Assembly: GCA_009103225.1 (NCBI GenBank)
Contig: RHPI01002503.1
Location: 188,864-252,863 of the forward strand
Direction: 5' to 3'
DNA length: 64,000 nucleotides
Source: Chlorokybus atmophyticus
Taxonomy: Eukaryota > Plantae > Mesostigma and Chlorokybus algae
Shown: positions 29,705-41,900 of the stretch, piece by piece
Numbering within the stretch: the stretch's first letter is position 1
How the letters are laid out: the number at the start of each line of letters is the position of its first letter
Made by a program: the position numbers and the translations under genes
The notes under the pieces: model-generated
The model's database searches: none
What the model was told of the DNA's origin: nothing
The model's input: only the letters and a program-made list of their open reading frames with translations

Positions 29705-30319
29705 CGCCGCCGCCGCCGCCGCCGCCGAGGGCGTAGTTCACTAGTTGCCGGTCTCACTCACTCAACTGGATAAAGTGAATCAAACTCAGTGAATCAAACT
29801 CGTTCGCGCGAGTCTCGACAAGTGATTCAGCAGTAGGGGATGCCCGCCCGCGCAATCAACACATAAGCTGCAGTGCGCGTCCCCCCCCCCCCGGCTTTCT
29901 GACACGTGACGCCTGCAGCAAGCGCCGCCTCGCTGCTGGCTGTTTGCCTTGGTTTTATTATGAACTAGACCTATGCAAGTGTGAAACCAACAACTCAAGG
30001 CTAGGCAGTGTGAGAAGCTTTACACTCAGACTGCACTCAGAATGCATACAATGCCGTCAACAATGGTTGCCCGAATCTGTTTGCTCTGGCGGGTTGGTGG
30101 GAAAGGGGTTACGTCCAGATTGGCTAGGGCGAGATCGACCACCAGTTGCCCTGTGCTCTACCTGACCTGTTCTGATTGATGATCGATCCAATCTGCTTGG
30201 CCAAAGCCAATTCAGCAAACGGACTACGTGCATTACTTTTGAAGATGTTGTGTACAGTAGTAGTAGTAGTAGTATAAGGCGTCCGCCTGGCAATTAGTGT
30301 TGATTATCCTTCGTCTGCA

Positions 30320-31762
30320 ATGAAGGTCAGCAGTATGAGCAAGCCATCAAAAGCATACAATCAGCAACAACCACAGCGACGCTATTTCTGCATCATCATG
30401 TTGTTTGTGACACCGCACTATCTCGTTGCTGTTGGGGTTGACACGTTGCCCAATCTCTGTGATGACGTATTGAGTGCTATGCAGGTGACGTCTCCTTTTC
30501 TTATTCGACTACACCTGGACAAGACGCACCAGCTCCTCAACGGCAGGAGCTTCCAGGTATACCCTCCAGCCTGTACTTCATAACCATGACGAATAGTATA
30601 CTAATAGTCAGTACTTACTTCATACTATACTACTAAGTTTACTGCACAGATGTTGAGGATGTACTTCAAGGCCCTGGATGTGCGCGACCACGACCGCATG
30701 GACGACATTGCCTTCCTGGCCTTCATGCGCGCAAGCACAGACCTGAGGTGGGTGGTGGATGGATGGCGCATATGATGAATGCACACACCAGCACTCCACT
30801 TAAATGTGCGTGTGCATGTGCGTGTGCGCATGCGGGATTATTTCAACAGCAGCCTTCACTGATTATCACGCACTGCGCAGCACTGCGCGGATATATAGTG
30901 TGTTTGAGATGTTCGATGTGGATGCCAGCGGGTACCTTGATTTCGACGAGTTCTACCTCCTGTGCTGCATGCTCATCTCCATCAAGGTGATACAACACTT
31001 GTCATTAACAACCACTATGGTATGGTAATCCAACTCACAAACAAGGGGTAGAAAAACACAACGGTATCCAATTATTCTCCATAAACATACCATCGCAGAA
31101 CCATGAGGAGAAGGCGTTCTCAAGCATACACTCGCGGACTTGCTTCGAGCTGCTAGACGCTGACGGGAGTGGTAGCATCACACTACAGGTGAGTGGGGGA
31201 CGTTTATACAACAAGTACTCTCCAACAGATGATGAATATCACCTTTTCACCGGCATGCTCGCAGGAGTTCCAGCGGTTTGGCTTCATGTTCAACATCTCA
31301 CAAAATGCATCGCAGAAGATCTTCCGGCACTTTGATGTCGACGACAGTCAGGTATGATTATTACCAGAAGGGAATTAATTATCTGGCAACCCTCCAATGG
31401 GCACCCATCTACTACTTGTTCACAAACACCGAGTCATGCATGTTGTGCAGGAGTTGGACTATGAGGAGTTCAGGATGTTCACTCTGGCTTGCCTGGAGAT
31501 GCAGCAGGAGATGGAGCAGCTGCAGGCCCTGCAGAAAAATATGAGTGCGTGCCATTGCATTCACTTGCTTGTGTCTCCTGTCGTGAGTTGGGTGTCGGTT
31601 TTGTTTTGTGATGATTTTGCTGTGTTCTGCTGTTTCTGTAGCTTTTCCAACTGCAACGGCTGATTAGTGTTTTACCTAACTTTACGCGCAGGCCCTCTGA
31701 GAAAGCTGAGTTTTCAGGCTCAGAGGTGGGTCAAAGACAGGGACTTGTGCCAAATCCAGTAG
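30320..31762 (+). CDS. EFCAB9: EF-hand calcium-binding protein, EFCAB9-like (CatSper channel Ca2+/pH sensor in animals)
   Basis: 8 exons (30320-30325, 30485-30556, 30650-30747, from 30881, then four more). Product: MKVTSPFLIRLHLDKTHQLLNGRSFQMLRMYFKALDV..DDIAFLAFMRASTDLSTARIYSVFEMFDVDASGYLDFDEFYLLCCML..NHEEKAFSSIHSRTCFELLDADGSG..FGFMFNI..IFRHFDVDDSQELDYEEFRMFT. It aligns end to end with remembered human EFCAB9 (FLWYLYLDK, FHILDV, TDL, VFDMLD..IDFEKFYMLVCMLL, NHLE..HSRPVFDLLD, FLFNI, LNYQEFKLY). Confidence 0.85.
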
Positions 31763-31926
31763 CAACCAGTAGCAACACGAGATTCCACTCAAGTCACTGC
31801 TGTACATACGCACTGCCCAAAGCCATACGCTGCAGACGACACCCGACTCTGCAACATGTCATGCAAGCCGCAGCAAGTCCGTTACACGAGTAACTGTTTG
31901 TGTGTGTGCATATGCGCGTTCGCCCC

Positions 31927-34900
31927 TCATGTCTCCAGGCCCAGTGGCCTTGTAAGCCAACTCAGTCCCACCTTCAGCTTGTGCTGGTTGGTGGGCAGCC
32001 GGTAGAGATACGCCAGCTTGCGGACTGCCACAACACGCACGAGAGTGTATCAGTCACTTAGATGTCAGTGTTGTGTGGGCTGTTGGGAAGAAGCAGAGAA
32101 AACATATGGGTCAACATCAAGCCCACCTGCTCCGCCCGCTGCGCCAGCGAGCTCCAGGTTGCCGGCGATGCTCAGACGCACCGCCCCGTCCATCTTGCCG
32201 AGTGTCATCATGTCGCCGAGGTGCTGGTACCTGCGTGCGGGATGCTCAGCAGCTAACAACACTCAAAACTCCGCGTGCGTGCATATATGCATGCGTGTGC
32301 GTGTGTGGACGCATGCGTGCGCGTGGGCGCATGCCTGCATTTTTGCACGCGCATACGTACGTGCGTGCGTATGCTTGCACATGTTTTGTGTGAACCCTTA
32401 GACCGCAGCATAAGTTACATTGAGGAATGCTACTCGCAACCAGCCTGACAGAATATAACCAGAATCCAGGTGTTACTTACTTGAAGGGCAGTAGTGGCTT
32501 GCCGTTTATTGCAGACCACAAGTTCCACCCAACATAGTCCGCTTGCTGAAACGCCACCTGCTCAAGTAATAAAGTCAGGACACGCGCATCCACACCCCCC
32601 ACACACACGCGCATCCACACAACTCGTTGCACACACCGCAAGAGCTCCTTGTGCACTCTCCTCACGCAGTCACAACAACACGTTAGCACGCAAGGAGCCC
32701 CTCACCTGCGCCGTGGACGGCAGATATCTCCCGTTCTCATCCACCGCGGTCGCCGAATCCCCCAACGCAAACACCCTCTGATTCCCTCTCACCCTCAGCG
32801 TGGCATCCGTCTCCGCTCTCCCCCTCGGATTCAACGGAATCATGGCCTCACCGTTCCTTCCATTCCCACTCTCAGGCACGATGGATTCGGTACCGACGGT
32901 CCAGAGGACGAGGTCGGATAGTAGAGTGGAGTAGGAGCCGTCGGAGGACTGCACGTCGATGGTGACGGGGGAATCGGGGACGCCCTCGCGAGAGACGCCG
33001 CTGAGACACTTGACGAAGGTGCCCAGGAGGAGATCGACGTTGCGGGAACGAAGGACCTGGTGGGGTTGAGAGGTGTCTGGTTGGAGTGTACGACAACAAC
33101 AGGAAGTACAAGCGCGACAACAACGACAACAACAACAACGGCAACGGCAACAACAACAACGGCAACAACAACAACATCAACTACAACAACAGCAGCAGCA
33201 GCAGTAGCAGCAACACCACCAGCAACACCACCAGCACAAGCAGCAACAACAACAACATCAGCAGCAGCAGCATCAACAACCACAACCCCACCCACCTCCC
33301 TCGCCGCGTTGCGTTGTACGTCCGGCGCAAACGGCAGGAAGTCCTTCACGGGGTCGATGACGCGTACGTTCCCGCGTTCCCCGAGCCTCTCCGCGATCGT
33401 GGCGGCCAGCTCAATGCCGGAGTAGCCCGCGCCGACCACGGACACGGAGATCGGGGGACGGCCGGGCTTCAGCTTCTGGACTTGCTCGAGATGGGTCAGA
33501 CGGGAATCCACGTTCTGGCAAAAGCAAAGGAAGAAAGGAAGAAAAGAGTCAGTTGTTGCGACACGCAAACACAACATTTGCAAAGTAGTAAATCATCAAG
33601 TGCACATATGAATAATGATGAATGAGATTATGTCATCAAACTGTCAGTGTCAGTCGTTGATGACAAAGCAGTTTCTTTGCTTGAATGAAAGCATTGATGG
33701 CAAGTCTATGTTTGGTACAAGGTGAATGCATTCACGTATTGTGTAACTGCTGCACTTGTTGTTTTGGCTAGTAAGCATCAAGCGCAATGAGCACTTCTCC
33801 CAGTACCAGCGCATCCTCTAGCGTGATGAAGGGGCAAGCATACTCTTTGGCTCCAGGGCAGATACTCAACTTTGCCTTGGCACCCAGCGCCAAAACCAGC
33901 CTGCACACCACAAACACACACTTGCCACAAAGACCTCCGCTACCGATAACACATGAGCAACACGGTGTTCATACGCAAAACAATGAAGCCGATCAGTGCC
34001 CTCAGCAATGCAGCAAAGCCAGTCTACCAATCATAGGGCAGTTCTTGACCGTTGTCAAGCTGGACAGTGCCCGCCCCGGCCCCGGGTCGCACGGACTTCA
34101 CGGTGGCCTGCACGAACTTCACGCCCGTGGAGGCAAGGAGGTCGTTGAACCGCGGGGCCACCTCCCACGGCTTGACTTCTGCGATACAGATGATAAAGTA
34201 TGGATACATAGATAGTGCATAGCAAAGCTAATGTACTATATGTCTCACCGTGGTTAAGAAGCTCGTATAACAGCGGTTTGAAGATAAAGCGTTCCGACTG
34301 ATCAACGAGTGTGACCTGTGGACACACGGTAGAAGATTGATTAATTGAGAGTGCCATGACTTGTTGGCAGCTGACAGTGGGCATGTGACAGACACACAAC
34401 CATAACAGCACAAAGTGCAGCGCACCTGCGGTCGCGTGTTGCGCGGCCAGTACAGCGCGTCCACCTTCAGCGCCGTGTACAGTCCTCCAAACCCACCACC
34501 CAGTATGCAGATCCTCGGCCCCTAGAGAATAACCTCTGTCTGTTGTCAACACATTACTGCATTGCAGCACATCTCAACAAACCATGACTATCAACACGCA
34601 CCCCAGTTGCCGAGTCCATGCGGGCAGCGCCCTGGCCTTCCAGCATAATGTCATTGTTAGAGAGCCGGCTGGCGCTGCTTCTGTGCATGGACTGACTGCT
34701 GCTGGTGCCTGTGCCTGCGCTGGTGCTGGGTCTTGTGTTTGAGAGGAAGTCTGACGAGCCTTTGGGCGTGCTCGCATGCATATCTGATGATGATGTTGCT
34801 CTTGACTGTGCACTGCAGCTGCATGGCCTCCTTGCATTTGTTCTGGTCAACGATGCGGCAGGCTGCTGCTCTGCGCACAGCAAAGCAATGTTGTGTGTAC

Positions 34901-35989: not shown

Positions 35990-38900
35990 ATGGCCAGCGG
36001 CGGCCCCCCTCGGGGTGGCGCTAGTGCCAGTCGTATCCTCAAACACGCCACATCTAGTACCAAGGCGCATGGTGCAGCTGTCGCTAGCGCCATGCCGCTG
36101 GAGCTGGCCAGCAAAGTGAGTAACAGATTTGCTTGCGTGTTTGTGTGATGCGTGGGTGATGATGTCGCTATACTTAGGGGGGTTGTGTTACGTTAGAAAA
36201 TGGTAAGCTAGTCACTAGTGTTGAGCTTGTCATGGCATCATAAAATCAGCGTGGCTCAGGTACTATGTTGTCTCAAGTCAGTACTTTCATCAACGGCACC
36301 AACACATCCGGGTGGTACCATTGCGGGGTGGATGCTTATACAGAGTGATAACTTGCTGCCTTCGTGCGCATGCATGCGGAACAATACGTCACCTACACCC
36401 TAACCTAGTCGTAAAACAACAAGGGTGGATAGTTTCACACTGCAGCGTGCACGCACATACACATATACGCGCACACACGTACGTGAACACCACATGCATG
36501 CATTCTTGAGTCCCCAGTTCAATGCCATTCGAAGCGCTTATGGTACTCTTAGTTTACCTGTGGTTCTTACTCTGCATGCGTGCACGCACTTTAGAAGGCT
36601 GCGGCCGGCCCCTTTTCGCGCGCGTCACAAGCGAAGCCTGCCATCGTGGAGCTTCTCGACATCGCCGAGTACACTCACCAGGTACCTTGACTCCCCCACA
36701 CATGCACAACACAACACCCCCGCCCCCACACTCACATGTGCTCTCGTCCTCTTTTTACAGAAGACAAGTTCGGTGCCGCCAGGAGAGCCCCTCTTTCAGC
36801 CGTTCCCTGCACAGATCACCTTCGCCAATTACCAACCCTTCCAGGAGTACAAAGCCACCCTGCGCCTGCGCAACAACGACACCGTACGCACACATAACAT
36901 CAACATGCATGCCACAGCCTGACACATGCAGTGTCAAGTACTTGTTGTCTTCTTACAGGTGATACGACGTGTACGCGTGGTGCCGCCCAAGACGCCGTAC
37001 TTCACCGTGTCTGCACCGAGAAAAGGTGGAGCTGAGAATGGCGGCCATCATGTTGATAACGCTGCCGAGGACGGCACGAGCAAAGTCGTGGCCGGGATGG
37101 AGGTGAGTGTACTAGTAGCATTGCTGTGTGGAGAAGACAACACGTGTACAAGTCATGGACACAATGATAAATGATGTTGTGCCAGGTGTCGTATATCATC
37201 ACTTTCCGGCCCAACTCCACGGACGACTACTCTGCGGACTTGACGATTGTGACCGAGCGAGAGAAGTTTGTCGTGCGCGTGGTTGCCATCGGCGCCCGCG
37301 GTAAGTGCAAGCCCGATTGTTGTAACAGACCATAATACCACACAAGAGCAAGTTTAATCCATTCAACATCTTTGCAGCCGTGCTGAACCTGCCCGAGTCT
37401 GTACAGTTCCCCACCACACCCCTCAAGAAGACCGCAACAAAGGTGTGATACACTCTCAACAGAAACCTTGCACCAGTCGCACCATCCTCATAACATTGAC
37501 TATGATATTGAGCGTTGCTGTAACAACAGACGTTGCTAGTGACCAATACGGGTCCCCGCGGCGCCTCTTTCTCTCTTCGCTGCACGCCTTTACACAGCAT
37601 TGACTCCCCCTACACCGTCTCCCCCTCCCGCGGTTCCCTCGCGCCAGGTGACTCCCTCTCCCTCACCCTCCGCTTCACTCCTCGGCTAGCGTGCGAGGAC
37701 TACGTTGGCACGCTGCGTGTGGTGTACGACGGTGAGGGAGAGCAGAGTGAGGACACTGTTAGGTTGGTTGGGGCGGGGTGTGAGGTCAATGTGGGGTTGA
37801 GTTTCGAGAGCGTGGAGCTGGCGACGACGTTCGTCGGGCAGCGCTCTCAACGCACGCTGAAAGTAGTCAACCGAAGCAATGGACCCGTCCACTTTGAGTG
37901 GAAGAGGTTCGGGAGCGAGGGCGAGGAGCGCGAGGCACGCCTTGCTGCCGAACTCTCCGCTGCGGCTGATGCGGGTCCTGAAACGGGTCCCGACATGGAC
38001 ACACGTCCCACCACAAGCCAGTCCTCCTCCTCTTCCAACAACTCCTCCACCCCGTCCTCCTCGTCTTCTTCCTCATCCTCCTCCTCTGCTTCGCGGCCCT
38101 CCTCTTCGCGGCCCTCCACCTCTGCCTCCCGTGTGAATGTGGAGGAGAATGACGACGAGGACTCGGAGATTGATGAAGCCCTCCTGCTAGATAAGTCCCT
38201 CACCTCCCCGCAGCGACAACTACAAACACTGCGCATCGCCTCTGCGCACGACAGGCAAGCGAGCAAACAGTTCATGTGTGCATATGATGTGTACAGGTTC
38301 AGAGGACACACACATTCACATATGTATAACAAATACCAACGCGTTAATCCCAAACAGGTTCCTGTATGAGGATGCGGCGGTGAGTATATATCCCCTGGAG
38401 GGAGACATATGGCCCGGCGGCGAGTGTTTGATTACTGTTGGCTTCGCACCGGGAGCAGCGTTGGATTATACTTCTGTGGCATACTGTGACATCACCGGTA
38501 TGTGGTGATGTCGGTAGTGCGTGTGTATCTAGCATTGTGCTGATCGCATGCATGAGTGGTGGGATGAAGTGATAGGGATACAGAGATTGCTTTTTGTTGT
38601 GTACCTTTGTAGGGCGTGCGCAGAGGTTGCCGCTGAAGATCCGAGCGCGAGGTGAGGGTCCCGTGGCCGTGTTCGCGTACGACACGGTCGATGTTGGGGA
38701 CGTGTTCTTCAACTCCTTACACCGTTACGAGGTGGAGCTTCAGAACCGCGGCGGCATCCCCGCACCCTTCCGGTTACTCTCGACCCAACACTCCACGTTA
38801 TCACCCGACCGCAACAACAATAGATTCACCTTCGAGCCCGAATTTGGCGTGGTCCCGCCGGCCGAGCGTCAACCCCTCTTCATGATGTTCGAGTCCGCCA

Positions 38901-41900
38901 CGCTTGGCGCCTTTGACAAAACCTTTGCATTCAACATTGAGGGCTGTACGAAACCTTTGGAACTCCAATTCAAAGGCGTGGTGATTGGCCCCACGTTCGC
39001 GTTAGACTGTAAAGACATGCATTTCGGACTCGTGGCGCACGGGTTCCCGTACGCGCAGAGACTCGCTATCACCAACACGTCGGAGATACCAATGACCTTC
39101 GCACTGCGATGCGTTGTGGCTGCGGGTGAGGGGGTAAGTGAGAGAGTTGCTGAGGGGTTTACTATCACGCCGCAGCAGGGCGCAGTCCCGCCGGGCGGCA
39201 ACCAAGAGATTGAGGTTGTAGCTTGCCTGCGACGGGCTGGACAAGTCAGGTACCTGTTTGGTGCCTCTGCATGTTGTGAATGGGGCAACACTGTGGCTAA
39301 GTGATACGTCTTACAGGTGTACCCTCGTTGTTGATATGCCGAGTGTTGGAGAGAACCTTGCAAGCGTACCCATCTTTGCTGACTGCCAAGTACCAAAGGT
39401 TTGAAGCCTTCTCATCAACTTAGCTGTAAAAGCAGCTTACCCCTTGTATACAATCCCCACTGCATTGAAGAACTTGATTTTCCATAATTGGTTTGCATCT
39501 TCCTCTTCAGGTGTCTTTGCTTCAAGACACCCTCGACTTCGGTTCCTGCTTCTTGCGTCACCCTTACGCCTCGACTCTCACACTCGTAAACGAGTCTACC
39601 CTTCCCGCTCTCTTCACTGTTCTCCCTCAAGACGAGATGAGCCAGGGTCTCGCCGTCTACACGGCGGACCCGCCGTCGGGTCAGGTCCCAGCATTAGGTC
39701 AGTCGGATGTGACCCTCACGCTCGCGACGGAGCGATTGGGTGGAATACGTCTACCCGTTGGCGTGAGCGTTGGGGGGATGGAGGGAGTGATGGAGGTGAT
39801 ACTTGCTGCGAGGAGTACAGGACCCGTGCTGGAACTGGCGGGGATGTTGGACTTTGGTAAGGTGGATGTGTTGAAGGAGCACAAGCGCGTGGTGAAGGTG
39901 CGCAACGCGTCGTTGATACCGGCGGAGTTCAAGGTGAGAGACGGTGTGCATGTGTACGTGTATGTACATGTGCGTGCGGGACCAGGTGGGTGAGTGAGCA
40001 AACGAGTTATTTGTGAACATCATGAAGGTGTTCATCACGGGGGCTGAGTCGGTGTTCTCCGTGGATGTGAGAGAAGGTATCATCCCGCCCTCTTCTTTTC
40101 TCGAGTTGGGTGTCTCCGTCACCCTCGACGACACTGCACGCTTCGCCGATACGCTTAACGTGCTCGTCATTGAAGGCCAGGACTACGCTGTCACGCTGTC
40201 GGCCGTTGGATCCGGCTCCACCATTGTGTGTGACAAGCTCGACGAGGCCGGGAGCGTTGTACACTTTGGACATCAGTTCACCGATGCGGCCTTCTCCAAA
40301 GAGTTTGTTCTACAGAACGCTGGAAGAAGACCCCTCTCTGTCACGTGGATCAATGAGAACGACCCCGCTGCCGTCCAGGCCGCCAACGCAAAGAACAAGA
40401 AGGGTAGCAAGACTCCCAAAGATGTGAATGCCAGCCATGTGACAACAGACACCGCTATTGTCAGTGCTGCAGCTACCACTACTTTCAACAGTAGCAGCAG
40501 TGGCAAGGTTGTGTTCATGCTGTTGCCGGACAAGGCGGTGATCCCGGCAAAGTCTTCGTGGGTGTTTATTCTGTCAGGTCAGTCGTCCGTGGCTGGCGTG
40601 TTCTCCGAGACTCTCGTGTGTCGGACTGTCGGGGCTGGTGGCGGGGGTGGGAAGGCCGGCGGCAACCAGGCCAAGGACGTGTATCGTGTGGTTGTTGACG
40701 CCGACGTGGCCGTCCCGCGCGTGGGTATCTCCACCGCGGTCCTCTCTTACGTGTACGCGTGGCAACCCGGTGTACCTCTGCGCCCTCAGACTCAAGCCCT
40801 CACCCTCCGCAACGTGTCGAAGCTCCCACTAGAACTTGCTATGCGCACGACCCCACCTTTCTTCATCGACCGTCCACACTGGAACTTATCCCCCGACGAG
40901 GGCGCCACGGTCAACGTGACCTTTTCCCCCGCCGTGGCACGCGACAAGGTGTCCTCCTCGGCCTCTGGGCGCATCACCGTGTCATACGCCGACTCAGCGC
41001 AGAAGGACTACGTGGACCTCCTCGGCGAGGTGTCGCTACCCAACCTGGAGATACGGCCCAACACGGCCATCGACTTTGGCTGCGTGCAGAACGACACATC
41101 GGCGCGAAAGACACTCACGCTCACGAATGTGTCGAAAGTGGAGGTACACTACTCGTGGGCCTTCATCGAGGAGGGCACTGTTGATGATGATGCGGCCAGC
41201 ACGATCAGCAGCGCCACATCACCAAAGGGCCGTAGCAGCAAACCCCGTTTACCCGCAAACCAGGTGAGTGTGACGAGTACGTGTGTGATGAGAATGTGTG
41301 TGCTCTTGCATACCTGCAGACAACAATACGCTAACCAATCAATGTAACAGGTGTTTGACATCCTGCCATTCAGAGGGACCATCCCTCCTGGCCAGTCTGA
41401 AACCACCGAGATTGTGTACTACGCGCATCCCGGCAGCAGATACAAGTATGATGGTGATGGAAAGATTAGCATACACAGATGTTCAGACGCTAACTCATGG
41501 CTTGTTGTGACAGGGCGGTAGCAGTGTGTGAGGTGGAGGGCGGTCCCGAGTATGAGATTACAATGGAGGCCGAGGCGGGGATGATCAAGTACTCCCTCGA
41601 CGTGATGTCGATCGACGCGGGTGCGACGCTTTTCTGCCGTCCCGTCGAGAAGGAGTTCTACCTTGCCAACACGGGCAAGGTCCCCTTCGACTTCCGGGTG
41701 GACACATCCCCTCTCTCCCGCGCGGGCGTGGTGCAGGTTCACCCGCTGGGAGGCGTGTTGGCAGGCGGGGACAGGCAGCGGTTCCTCGTGCGCGTGACGC
41801 CCGGATTGCCCGAGCGCGTGGTGGAGAAGTTCCGCATTGAGGTTGCGCACTTTGAGCCGTGCGAGTTCACCGTCTACGCAGAGGGAGTTTACCCAGCAGC

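Follow-up and report, generated by a model that had tools for sequence, protein, structure and literature searches.

The flagellar Ca2+ channel CatSper is usually presented as a sperm-specific channel of animals, a picture that changes with the intact, transcribed and vertically inherited EFCAB9 gene of the streptophyte alga described here. EFCAB9 is the cytosolic Ca2+- and pH-sensing subunit of the CatSper channel (Hwang et al. 2019). A study of ARMH2 that included a co-evolution screen of 1952 species found that Efcab9 clusters with Catsper1–4 and the auxiliary subunits (PMC12638846). In the corresponding species table, Efcab9 occurs in the non-opisthokonts Thecamonas, Tritrichomonas foetus, Symbiodinium, Chrysochromulina and Guillardia, five out of five of which have CatSper pore orthogroups, and no organism is listed with Efcab9 and without a pore orthogroup (PMC12638846). 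In the same table, which did not sample Chlorokybus and Mesostigma, every CatSper and EFCAB9 column is empty for about 190 green plants and four red algae (PMC12638846). One review traces CatSper back to an ancestor common to apusozoans, animals and fungi (PMC7935092). Apart from mentions in reference lists, our literature search revealed no link between CatSper or EFCAB9 and Chlorokybus, Mesostigma, streptophytes or Viridiplantae. The preliminary description of this DNA had stated that no streptophyte case was known; none was found in the literature, and every green-plant row of the largest survey is empty (PMC12638846).

The gene under study lies in a stretch of 64,000 nucleotides from Chlorokybus atmophyticus, referred to as the window, and occupies positions 30320–31762 of its plus strand. 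The gene model, assembled from window positions 29800–32300, comprises eight exons and a 624-nt reading frame of 207 codons (207 aa), and each of the seven introns is of the GT–AG type. A spliced RNA contig of 1167 nt from the same organism spans 30043–32028 and skips exactly the seven modelled introns. Two of the seven joints are reproduced in a second RNA run; of three runs compared, two contain RNA contigs of the gene. An ORF scan of the spliced mRNA shows no other frame that approaches the 207-codon frame in length. Its product is identical to a database protein, P0001 (jgi/Chlat1/6240/Chrsp44S05848, 207 aa), which was recovered with exon 3 as the query against a library of 1.84 billion proteins.

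The 5′ untranslated region extends at least from 30043, where the RNA contig begins, to 30319; this leader contains two upstream ORFs, of 43 and 33 codons, as well as a (GTA)6 microsatellite (approximately 30258–30275), and a run of approximately 12 C (29883–29894) lies just upstream of the transcript. The coding part of exon 1 (30320–30325, placed by the model and RNA) consists of the two codons ATG AAG (Met-Lys) and is followed by a phase-0 intron of 159 nt; an N-terminal MK[VI] is conserved family-wide in the alignment. Exon 2 (30485–30556; residues 3–26) encodes the family-specific N-terminal segment (..SPFLIRLHLDKTHQLL..), defined by the model, RNA, PDB match and alignment. Exon 3 (30650–30747; residues 27–59, the last in part) encodes the degenerate EF-hand 1 with its loop at 30677–30712, as located by the model and by a PDB search with this exon. 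The canonical EF-hand 2 loop DVDASGYLDFDE (30915–30950) and the FYLLCCML helix are encoded by exon 4 (30881–30986; residues 59–94), on the evidence of the model, RNA, alignment and Pfam.

In the downstream half of the gene, all on the plus strand as well, exon 5 (31099–31188; residues 95–124) carries NHEEKAF...HSRTCFELLD and the beginning of the EF-hand 3 loop (D114 at 31156), according to the model, RNA, PDB match and alignment. This loop is split by an intron, with D114 in exon 5 and its last residue, E125, in exon 6. The remaining exons are defined by the model and RNA, with the AlphaFold model in addition for exon 7. Exon 6 (31265–31351; residues 125–153) contributes the F.FNI motif and the beginning of the EF-hand 4 loop (D148 at 31334), and exon 7 (31451–31544; residues 154–185, the last in part) the end of that loop (E159, ending at 31468) and the start of a long C-terminal helix. 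The coding part of exon 8 (31692–31762) provides residues 185–207 and the stop codon, with Cys-Gln-Ile-Gln encoded at 31748–31759. The 3′ untranslated region reaches at least from 31763 to 32028, the end of the RNA contig.

Several features of the surroundings deserve mention in their own right. A convergent minus-strand gene at approximately 32024–33580, with a match to Pyr_redox_2 (pyridine nucleotide-disulphide oxidoreductase), meets the 3′ UTR of the EFCAB9 gene with its own 3′ end, and an RNA joint of the CT..AC type at 32024/32127 is part of this neighbour. About 6 kb downstream of the EFCAB9 gene, open frames at 37533–38366 and 38594–39301 (plus strand) match HYDIN/CFAP65-type Ig-like and ASH domains (Pfam E 6e-18) and represent a large gene of the flagellar-apparatus type. 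The segment 60001–62000 of the window has a GC content of 0.32, compared with about 0.55 elsewhere, and a strong AT skew of 0.235.

When the full-length algal protein is compared with all PDB sequences, its best match is mouse EFCAB9 of the CatSpermasome (7eeb_I; E 2.4e-33, 119 bits), in an alignment that runs without a gap over 168 residues (algal 5–172, mouse 6–173). The next-best family, the plant CDPKs, follows at E 5e-12 and 50 bits, so that EFCAB9 leads every other EF-hand family by about 70 bits. The best calmodulin, calcineurin B and NCS-type scores range from 34 to 50 bits against 119 for EFCAB9; calmodulin (E values of about 1e-7 to 1e-9) and calcineurin B lie at 34–41 bits and NCS/GCAP proteins at 35–39 bits, and centrin, obelin and GCAP reach 34–41 bits in the same search. 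Exon 3 alone yields only four PDB matches at E<10, two of which are EFCAB9, aligned over residues 29–58 and equally far from the N-terminus in both proteins. Exons 4 and 5, searched singly, retrieve generic multi-EF-hand proteins only, and the Pfam matches of the protein are to generic EF-hand models only, three of them to EF-hand_1. The preliminary description had claimed a similarity to EFCAB9 that reaches past the EF-hand loops, and the blocks FL..L.LDK...LL, FY.L.C.L,.H.E..F...HSR..FELLD and F.FNI do indeed all fall inside the single gapless alignment with the mouse protein. A length near that of EFCAB9, also pointed out there, agrees with 207 aa in the alga and 216 aa in mouse. The degenerate first EF-hand is present too, the spacing of its motif as written there being slightly off.

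The AlphaFold model of the algal protein, computed from a 53-sequence alignment, has a pLDDT of 93.1 and a pTM of 0.84. Its best Foldseek matches in the PDB are both mouse EFCAB9, namely 9lwo_A (TM 0.73/0.82) and 7eeb_I (TM 0.65/0.76). Other EF-hand proteins score at most 0.55, with calmodulin, calcineurin-B-like and NCS types at TM 0.25–0.55. As predicted by this model, the fold of the algal protein is that of EFCAB9. The comparison with calmodulin and calcineurin-B-like families that had been recommended for this locus thus favours EFCAB9 in PDB scores as well as in fold; the tree described below includes family members only.

A single-sequence search recovers 41 relatives and a profile search 82, and below the family the scores drop abruptly to generic EF-hand proteins. 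Only one protein of Chlorokybus appears in the profile search, which makes it the single family member of this alga. Members that already bear the NCBI name EF-hand calcium-binding domain-containing protein 9, or 9-like, come from Xenia, Porites, Ptychodera, Antedon, Amphiura, Lingula, Tubulanus, the chytrid Polyrhizophydium and Tritrichomonas musculus. Cluster look-ups add the glaucophytes Gloeochaete and Cyanophora, Lapot (Rhizaria), the ancyromonads Nutomonas and Fabomonas, the stramenopile Cantina and the malawimonad Gefionella, and the profile search list further contains Rhodelphis, Carpediemonas and Paratrimastix. Chlorokybus and Mesostigma, which share 68% identity, are the only green-plant members found. 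The Ptychodera member matches mouse EFCAB9 at 2e-52, and the whole set of relatives is thereby tied to the characterised protein.

Some members merit separate comment. Five chytrids carry clear EFCAB9-family proteins (P0053–P0056 and P0062 in the profile search), which form one clade in the tree. A divergent EFCAB9-like subfamily is present in environmental sequences (P0041, P0042, P0066 and P0069–P0071), with 28–36% identity, lengths of 244–281 aa and N-terminal extensions; in several of its proteins the tail is rich in cysteine and closes with ...WLTDPVTY or ...TTY, and the subfamily groups with Tritrichomonas-type members in the tree. P0002 (1114 aa) was discarded as unrelated: it consists of about seven copies of a repeat (..AFKAVSVQDQERLNEIA..), and its E value of 3e-10 to exon 3 is the sum of weak repeat matches.

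A maximum-likelihood tree was built from 61 family members without outgroup EF-hand families, the separation from which rests on the gaps in score and fold. Chlorokybus and Mesostigma are sisters in this tree (support 99) and belong to a clade (support 96) that also takes in the glaucophytes, Rhodelphis and sequences that are environmental or of SAR type. The animal sequences form one clade (97) and those of chytrids another (92), and the branching of EFCAB9 follows that of the species. When the Ptychodera and Xenia proteins are mapped to their genomic loci, two phase-0 introns of the alga prove to be shared in position with animals: the one that follows residue 94 of the algal protein occupies the same alignment column in Ptychodera, and the one that follows residue 153 does so in both Ptychodera and Xenia. 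Since Mesostigma is the sister, the clade includes glaucophytes and Rhodelphis, and animals and chytrids are separate, the algal EFCAB9 has been inherited vertically and is neither a contaminant nor a product of transfer. The assignment of the gene as the Chlorokybus orthologue of EFCAB9, which the preliminary description had put forward, is strongly supported and is borne out by sequence, fold, phylogeny and shared introns alike.

The EF-hands of the algal protein follow the pattern of the family. EF1 (D36–A47) is degenerate and has no acid at position 12, as in animals, and the loops of EF2 (D71–E82), EF3 (D114–E125) and EF4 (D148–E159) are canonical. In the family alignments, positions 1, 3 and 12 of the EF2–4 loops either never vary or reach at least 90% conservation. 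Judged from these residues, the three canonical EF-hands are predicted to bind Ca2+.

The algal protein ends in Cys-Gln-Ile-Gln (CQIQ), a prenylation box of the CaaX type in an exon that is confirmed by RNA. A cysteine at position −4 from the C-terminus is found in 28 of the 64 family members of at least 170 aa, the frequency of cysteine being 2.3%. The proteins that have it include those of Chlorokybus, both glaucophytes, Lapot, Nutomonas, Cantina, Gefionella, Paratrimastix, Tritrichomonas, an unnamed eukaryote, cnidarians, Ptychodera and Antedon. The CaaX box is thus conserved in at least ten deep eukaryotic lineages, and basic residues often precede the C-terminal cysteine. The Mesostigma protein model has no CaaX box, which may reflect an annotation error or a real loss. 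In CaaX processing, Q, M, S or A as the last residue favours farnesyl, and L or I favours geranylgeranyl. The CQIQ box is therefore a candidate for farnesylation, which would put the sensor on the inner face of the membrane; a C-terminal CaaX box being a prenylation signal, such an anchor would fit a subunit that sits under a channel. The spread of the motif suggests that the ancestral EFCAB9 was prenylated. No mention of EFCAB9 prenylation emerged from our literature search. The conserved box provides a testable idea of how the sensor might be held at the membrane in organisms without CATSPER-zeta.

What is known of mouse EFCAB9, together with the published co-evolution of Efcab9 and CatSper, makes the CatSper-type channel that the preliminary description had proposed for Chlorokybus plausible, and all of the indirect evidence is in keeping with it. 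The overall explanation that we prefer, and consider probable without being sure of it, is that the gene encodes the Chlorokybus orthologue of EFCAB9 serving as the cytosolic EF-hand subunit of a CatSper-type flagellar Ca2+ channel. Chlorokybus forms biflagellate scaly zoospores and has kept 192 of 397 conserved flagellar genes (PMC7027972). EFCAB9 would dock under a CatSper-type pore in these zoospores, together with a conserved partner such as ARMH2 instead of the mammal-only CATSPER-zeta, and would make channel gating, and hence the flagellar beat, respond to intraflagellar Ca2+ and possibly to pH. Carpediemonas has both EFCAB9 and the CatSper pore; no channel gene lies near its EFCAB9 locus. 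Flagellated fungi such as Anaeromyces robustus are blank for Efcab9 in the OrthoDB-based source table of Fig. 3 (PMC12638846), yet the profile search finds a clear member in Anaeromyces (P0053), and with this missed case the true co-occurrence of Efcab9 and CatSper is tighter than published.

A genuine EFCAB9 orthologue could nevertheless act without CatSper, for example as the prenylated sensor of a four-domain voltage-gated channel, a TRP/PKD2-type channel or a transporter, an alternative that we regard as unlikely while giving it real weight. CATSPER-zeta, to our knowledge the only biochemically proven direct partner of EFCAB9, is absent outside mammals, and the 50–60% identity between plant and cnidarian EFCAB9 shows only that some conserved partner exists; both points leave room for such a role. 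The published distribution speaks against it, since Efcab9 shares its gain-and-loss cluster with Catsper1–4 and the auxiliaries and never appears in the species table without a CatSper pore orthogroup (PMC12638846). Moreover, none of the approximately 190 green plants in the table has EFCAB9, although some of them, Chlamydomonas for instance, are flagellate and possess CAV2 or PKD2 (PMC12638846); a function on those channels is hard to square with this. We accordingly continue to favour a CatSper subunit over a sensor that serves another channel or transporter.

Two further explanations would dispose of the orthologue itself, and we give hardly any credence to either. If the protein were a generic calmodulin-like, calcineurin-B-like or NCS-type protein with a superficial likeness to EFCAB9, one would expect what exons 4 and 5 show in isolation and what Pfam reports for the whole, namely matches to generic EF-hand families; the full-length protein, however, scores 119 bits to EFCAB9 and no more than 50 bits to every other PDB family, its global fold matches EFCAB9 only, the N-terminal segment, degenerate EF1 and HSRTCFELLD block are specific to the family, and the tree and shared introns agree with EFCAB9. 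A generic calmodulin or CBL identity is rejected on the basis of this combination of score, fold, family-specific segments, tree and introns. The absence of EFCAB9 from every other sampled green plant (PMC12638846) might equally raise the suspicion that this is no working gene of the alga, be it a contaminant, a gene acquired horizontally from some animal or protist, or a relic in decay. Yet the gene is embedded in a 64-kb stretch of ordinary host-type composition and introns, is present in RNA of the same organism, and has its closest relative in the Mesostigma orthologue (68% identity, support 99), nested among other Archaeplastida; its reading frame, all of its Ca2+-ligand positions and its CaaX box are intact. 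Contamination, transfer and pseudogene status are contradicted by the tree, the RNA and the intact frame.

The distribution of EFCAB9 has consequences for the age of the channel. Orthologues in the earliest-branching streptophytes, glaucophytes, Rhodelphis, malawimonads, ancyromonads and metamonads place the EFCAB9 sensor at the root of eukaryotes, and the CatSper channel probably there as well. The same distribution implies that EFCAB9 was lost in the lineage leading to Klebsormidium and land plants, and also in those chlorophytes that were sampled. It suggests that the flagellar CatSper channel arose long before animals and disappeared later from the other green plants. A more ambitious version of this history would have Chlorokybus and Mesostigma keep a complete CatSper holo-complex of LECA age that all other green plants lost, with an ancestral EFCAB9 prenyl-tethered to the flagellar membrane and CATSPER-zeta a later addition in mammals; we offer it tentatively, and lean slightly against it as a whole. 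Should the holo-complex reading hold, culturable algae would provide a non-animal system for a channel that has resisted heterologous reconstitution.

The closest described counterparts of the algal protein are mouse and human EFCAB9 (PDB 7EEB chain I and 9LWO chain A). The likeness consists of a collinear gapless alignment at 35–36% identity, a fold at TM 0.76–0.82, the N-terminal helix, a degenerate EF1 followed by three EF-hands, and the HSR..FELLD and F.FNI blocks. The differences concern the Ca2+ loops, the C-terminus and the partner. The algal loops (DVDASGYLDFDE, DADGSGSITLQE and DVDDSQELDYEE) are all canonical, whereas those of mouse EFCAB9 are more degenerate, their position 12 being Q or N alongside further substitutions. 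A CaaX box (CQIQ) ends the algal protein, and the last five residues of mouse EFCAB9 fall outside the alignments compared. CATSPER-zeta, the partner of mammalian EFCAB9, does not exist outside mammals.

Non-mammalian EFCAB9 proteins (Xenia, Porites, echinoderms, Ptychodera, chytrids, Tritrichomonas, Carpediemonas, Thecamonas and Guillardia) stand closer to the algal protein: identity is 45–61% along almost the entire sequence, the conserved columns coincide, and many lineages have the C-terminal CaaX box too; two introns are shared with Ptychodera and one with Xenia. What sets Chlorokybus and Mesostigma apart from these is that they are the only green-plant members found. Plant CBLs, NCS/recoverin proteins and petunia CaM53 are likewise EF-hand Ca2+ sensors that are held at the membrane by lipid, but they bear no specific sequence relationship to the algal protein. 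CBL and NCS proteins carry the lipid at the N-terminus, and CaM53 is a prenylated calmodulin with a C-terminal CaaX box after basic residues. Seen against these systems, the algal EFCAB9 is a member of a known family in an unexpected lineage, and its canonical EF loops and conserved prenylation box are what it adds to the description of that family.
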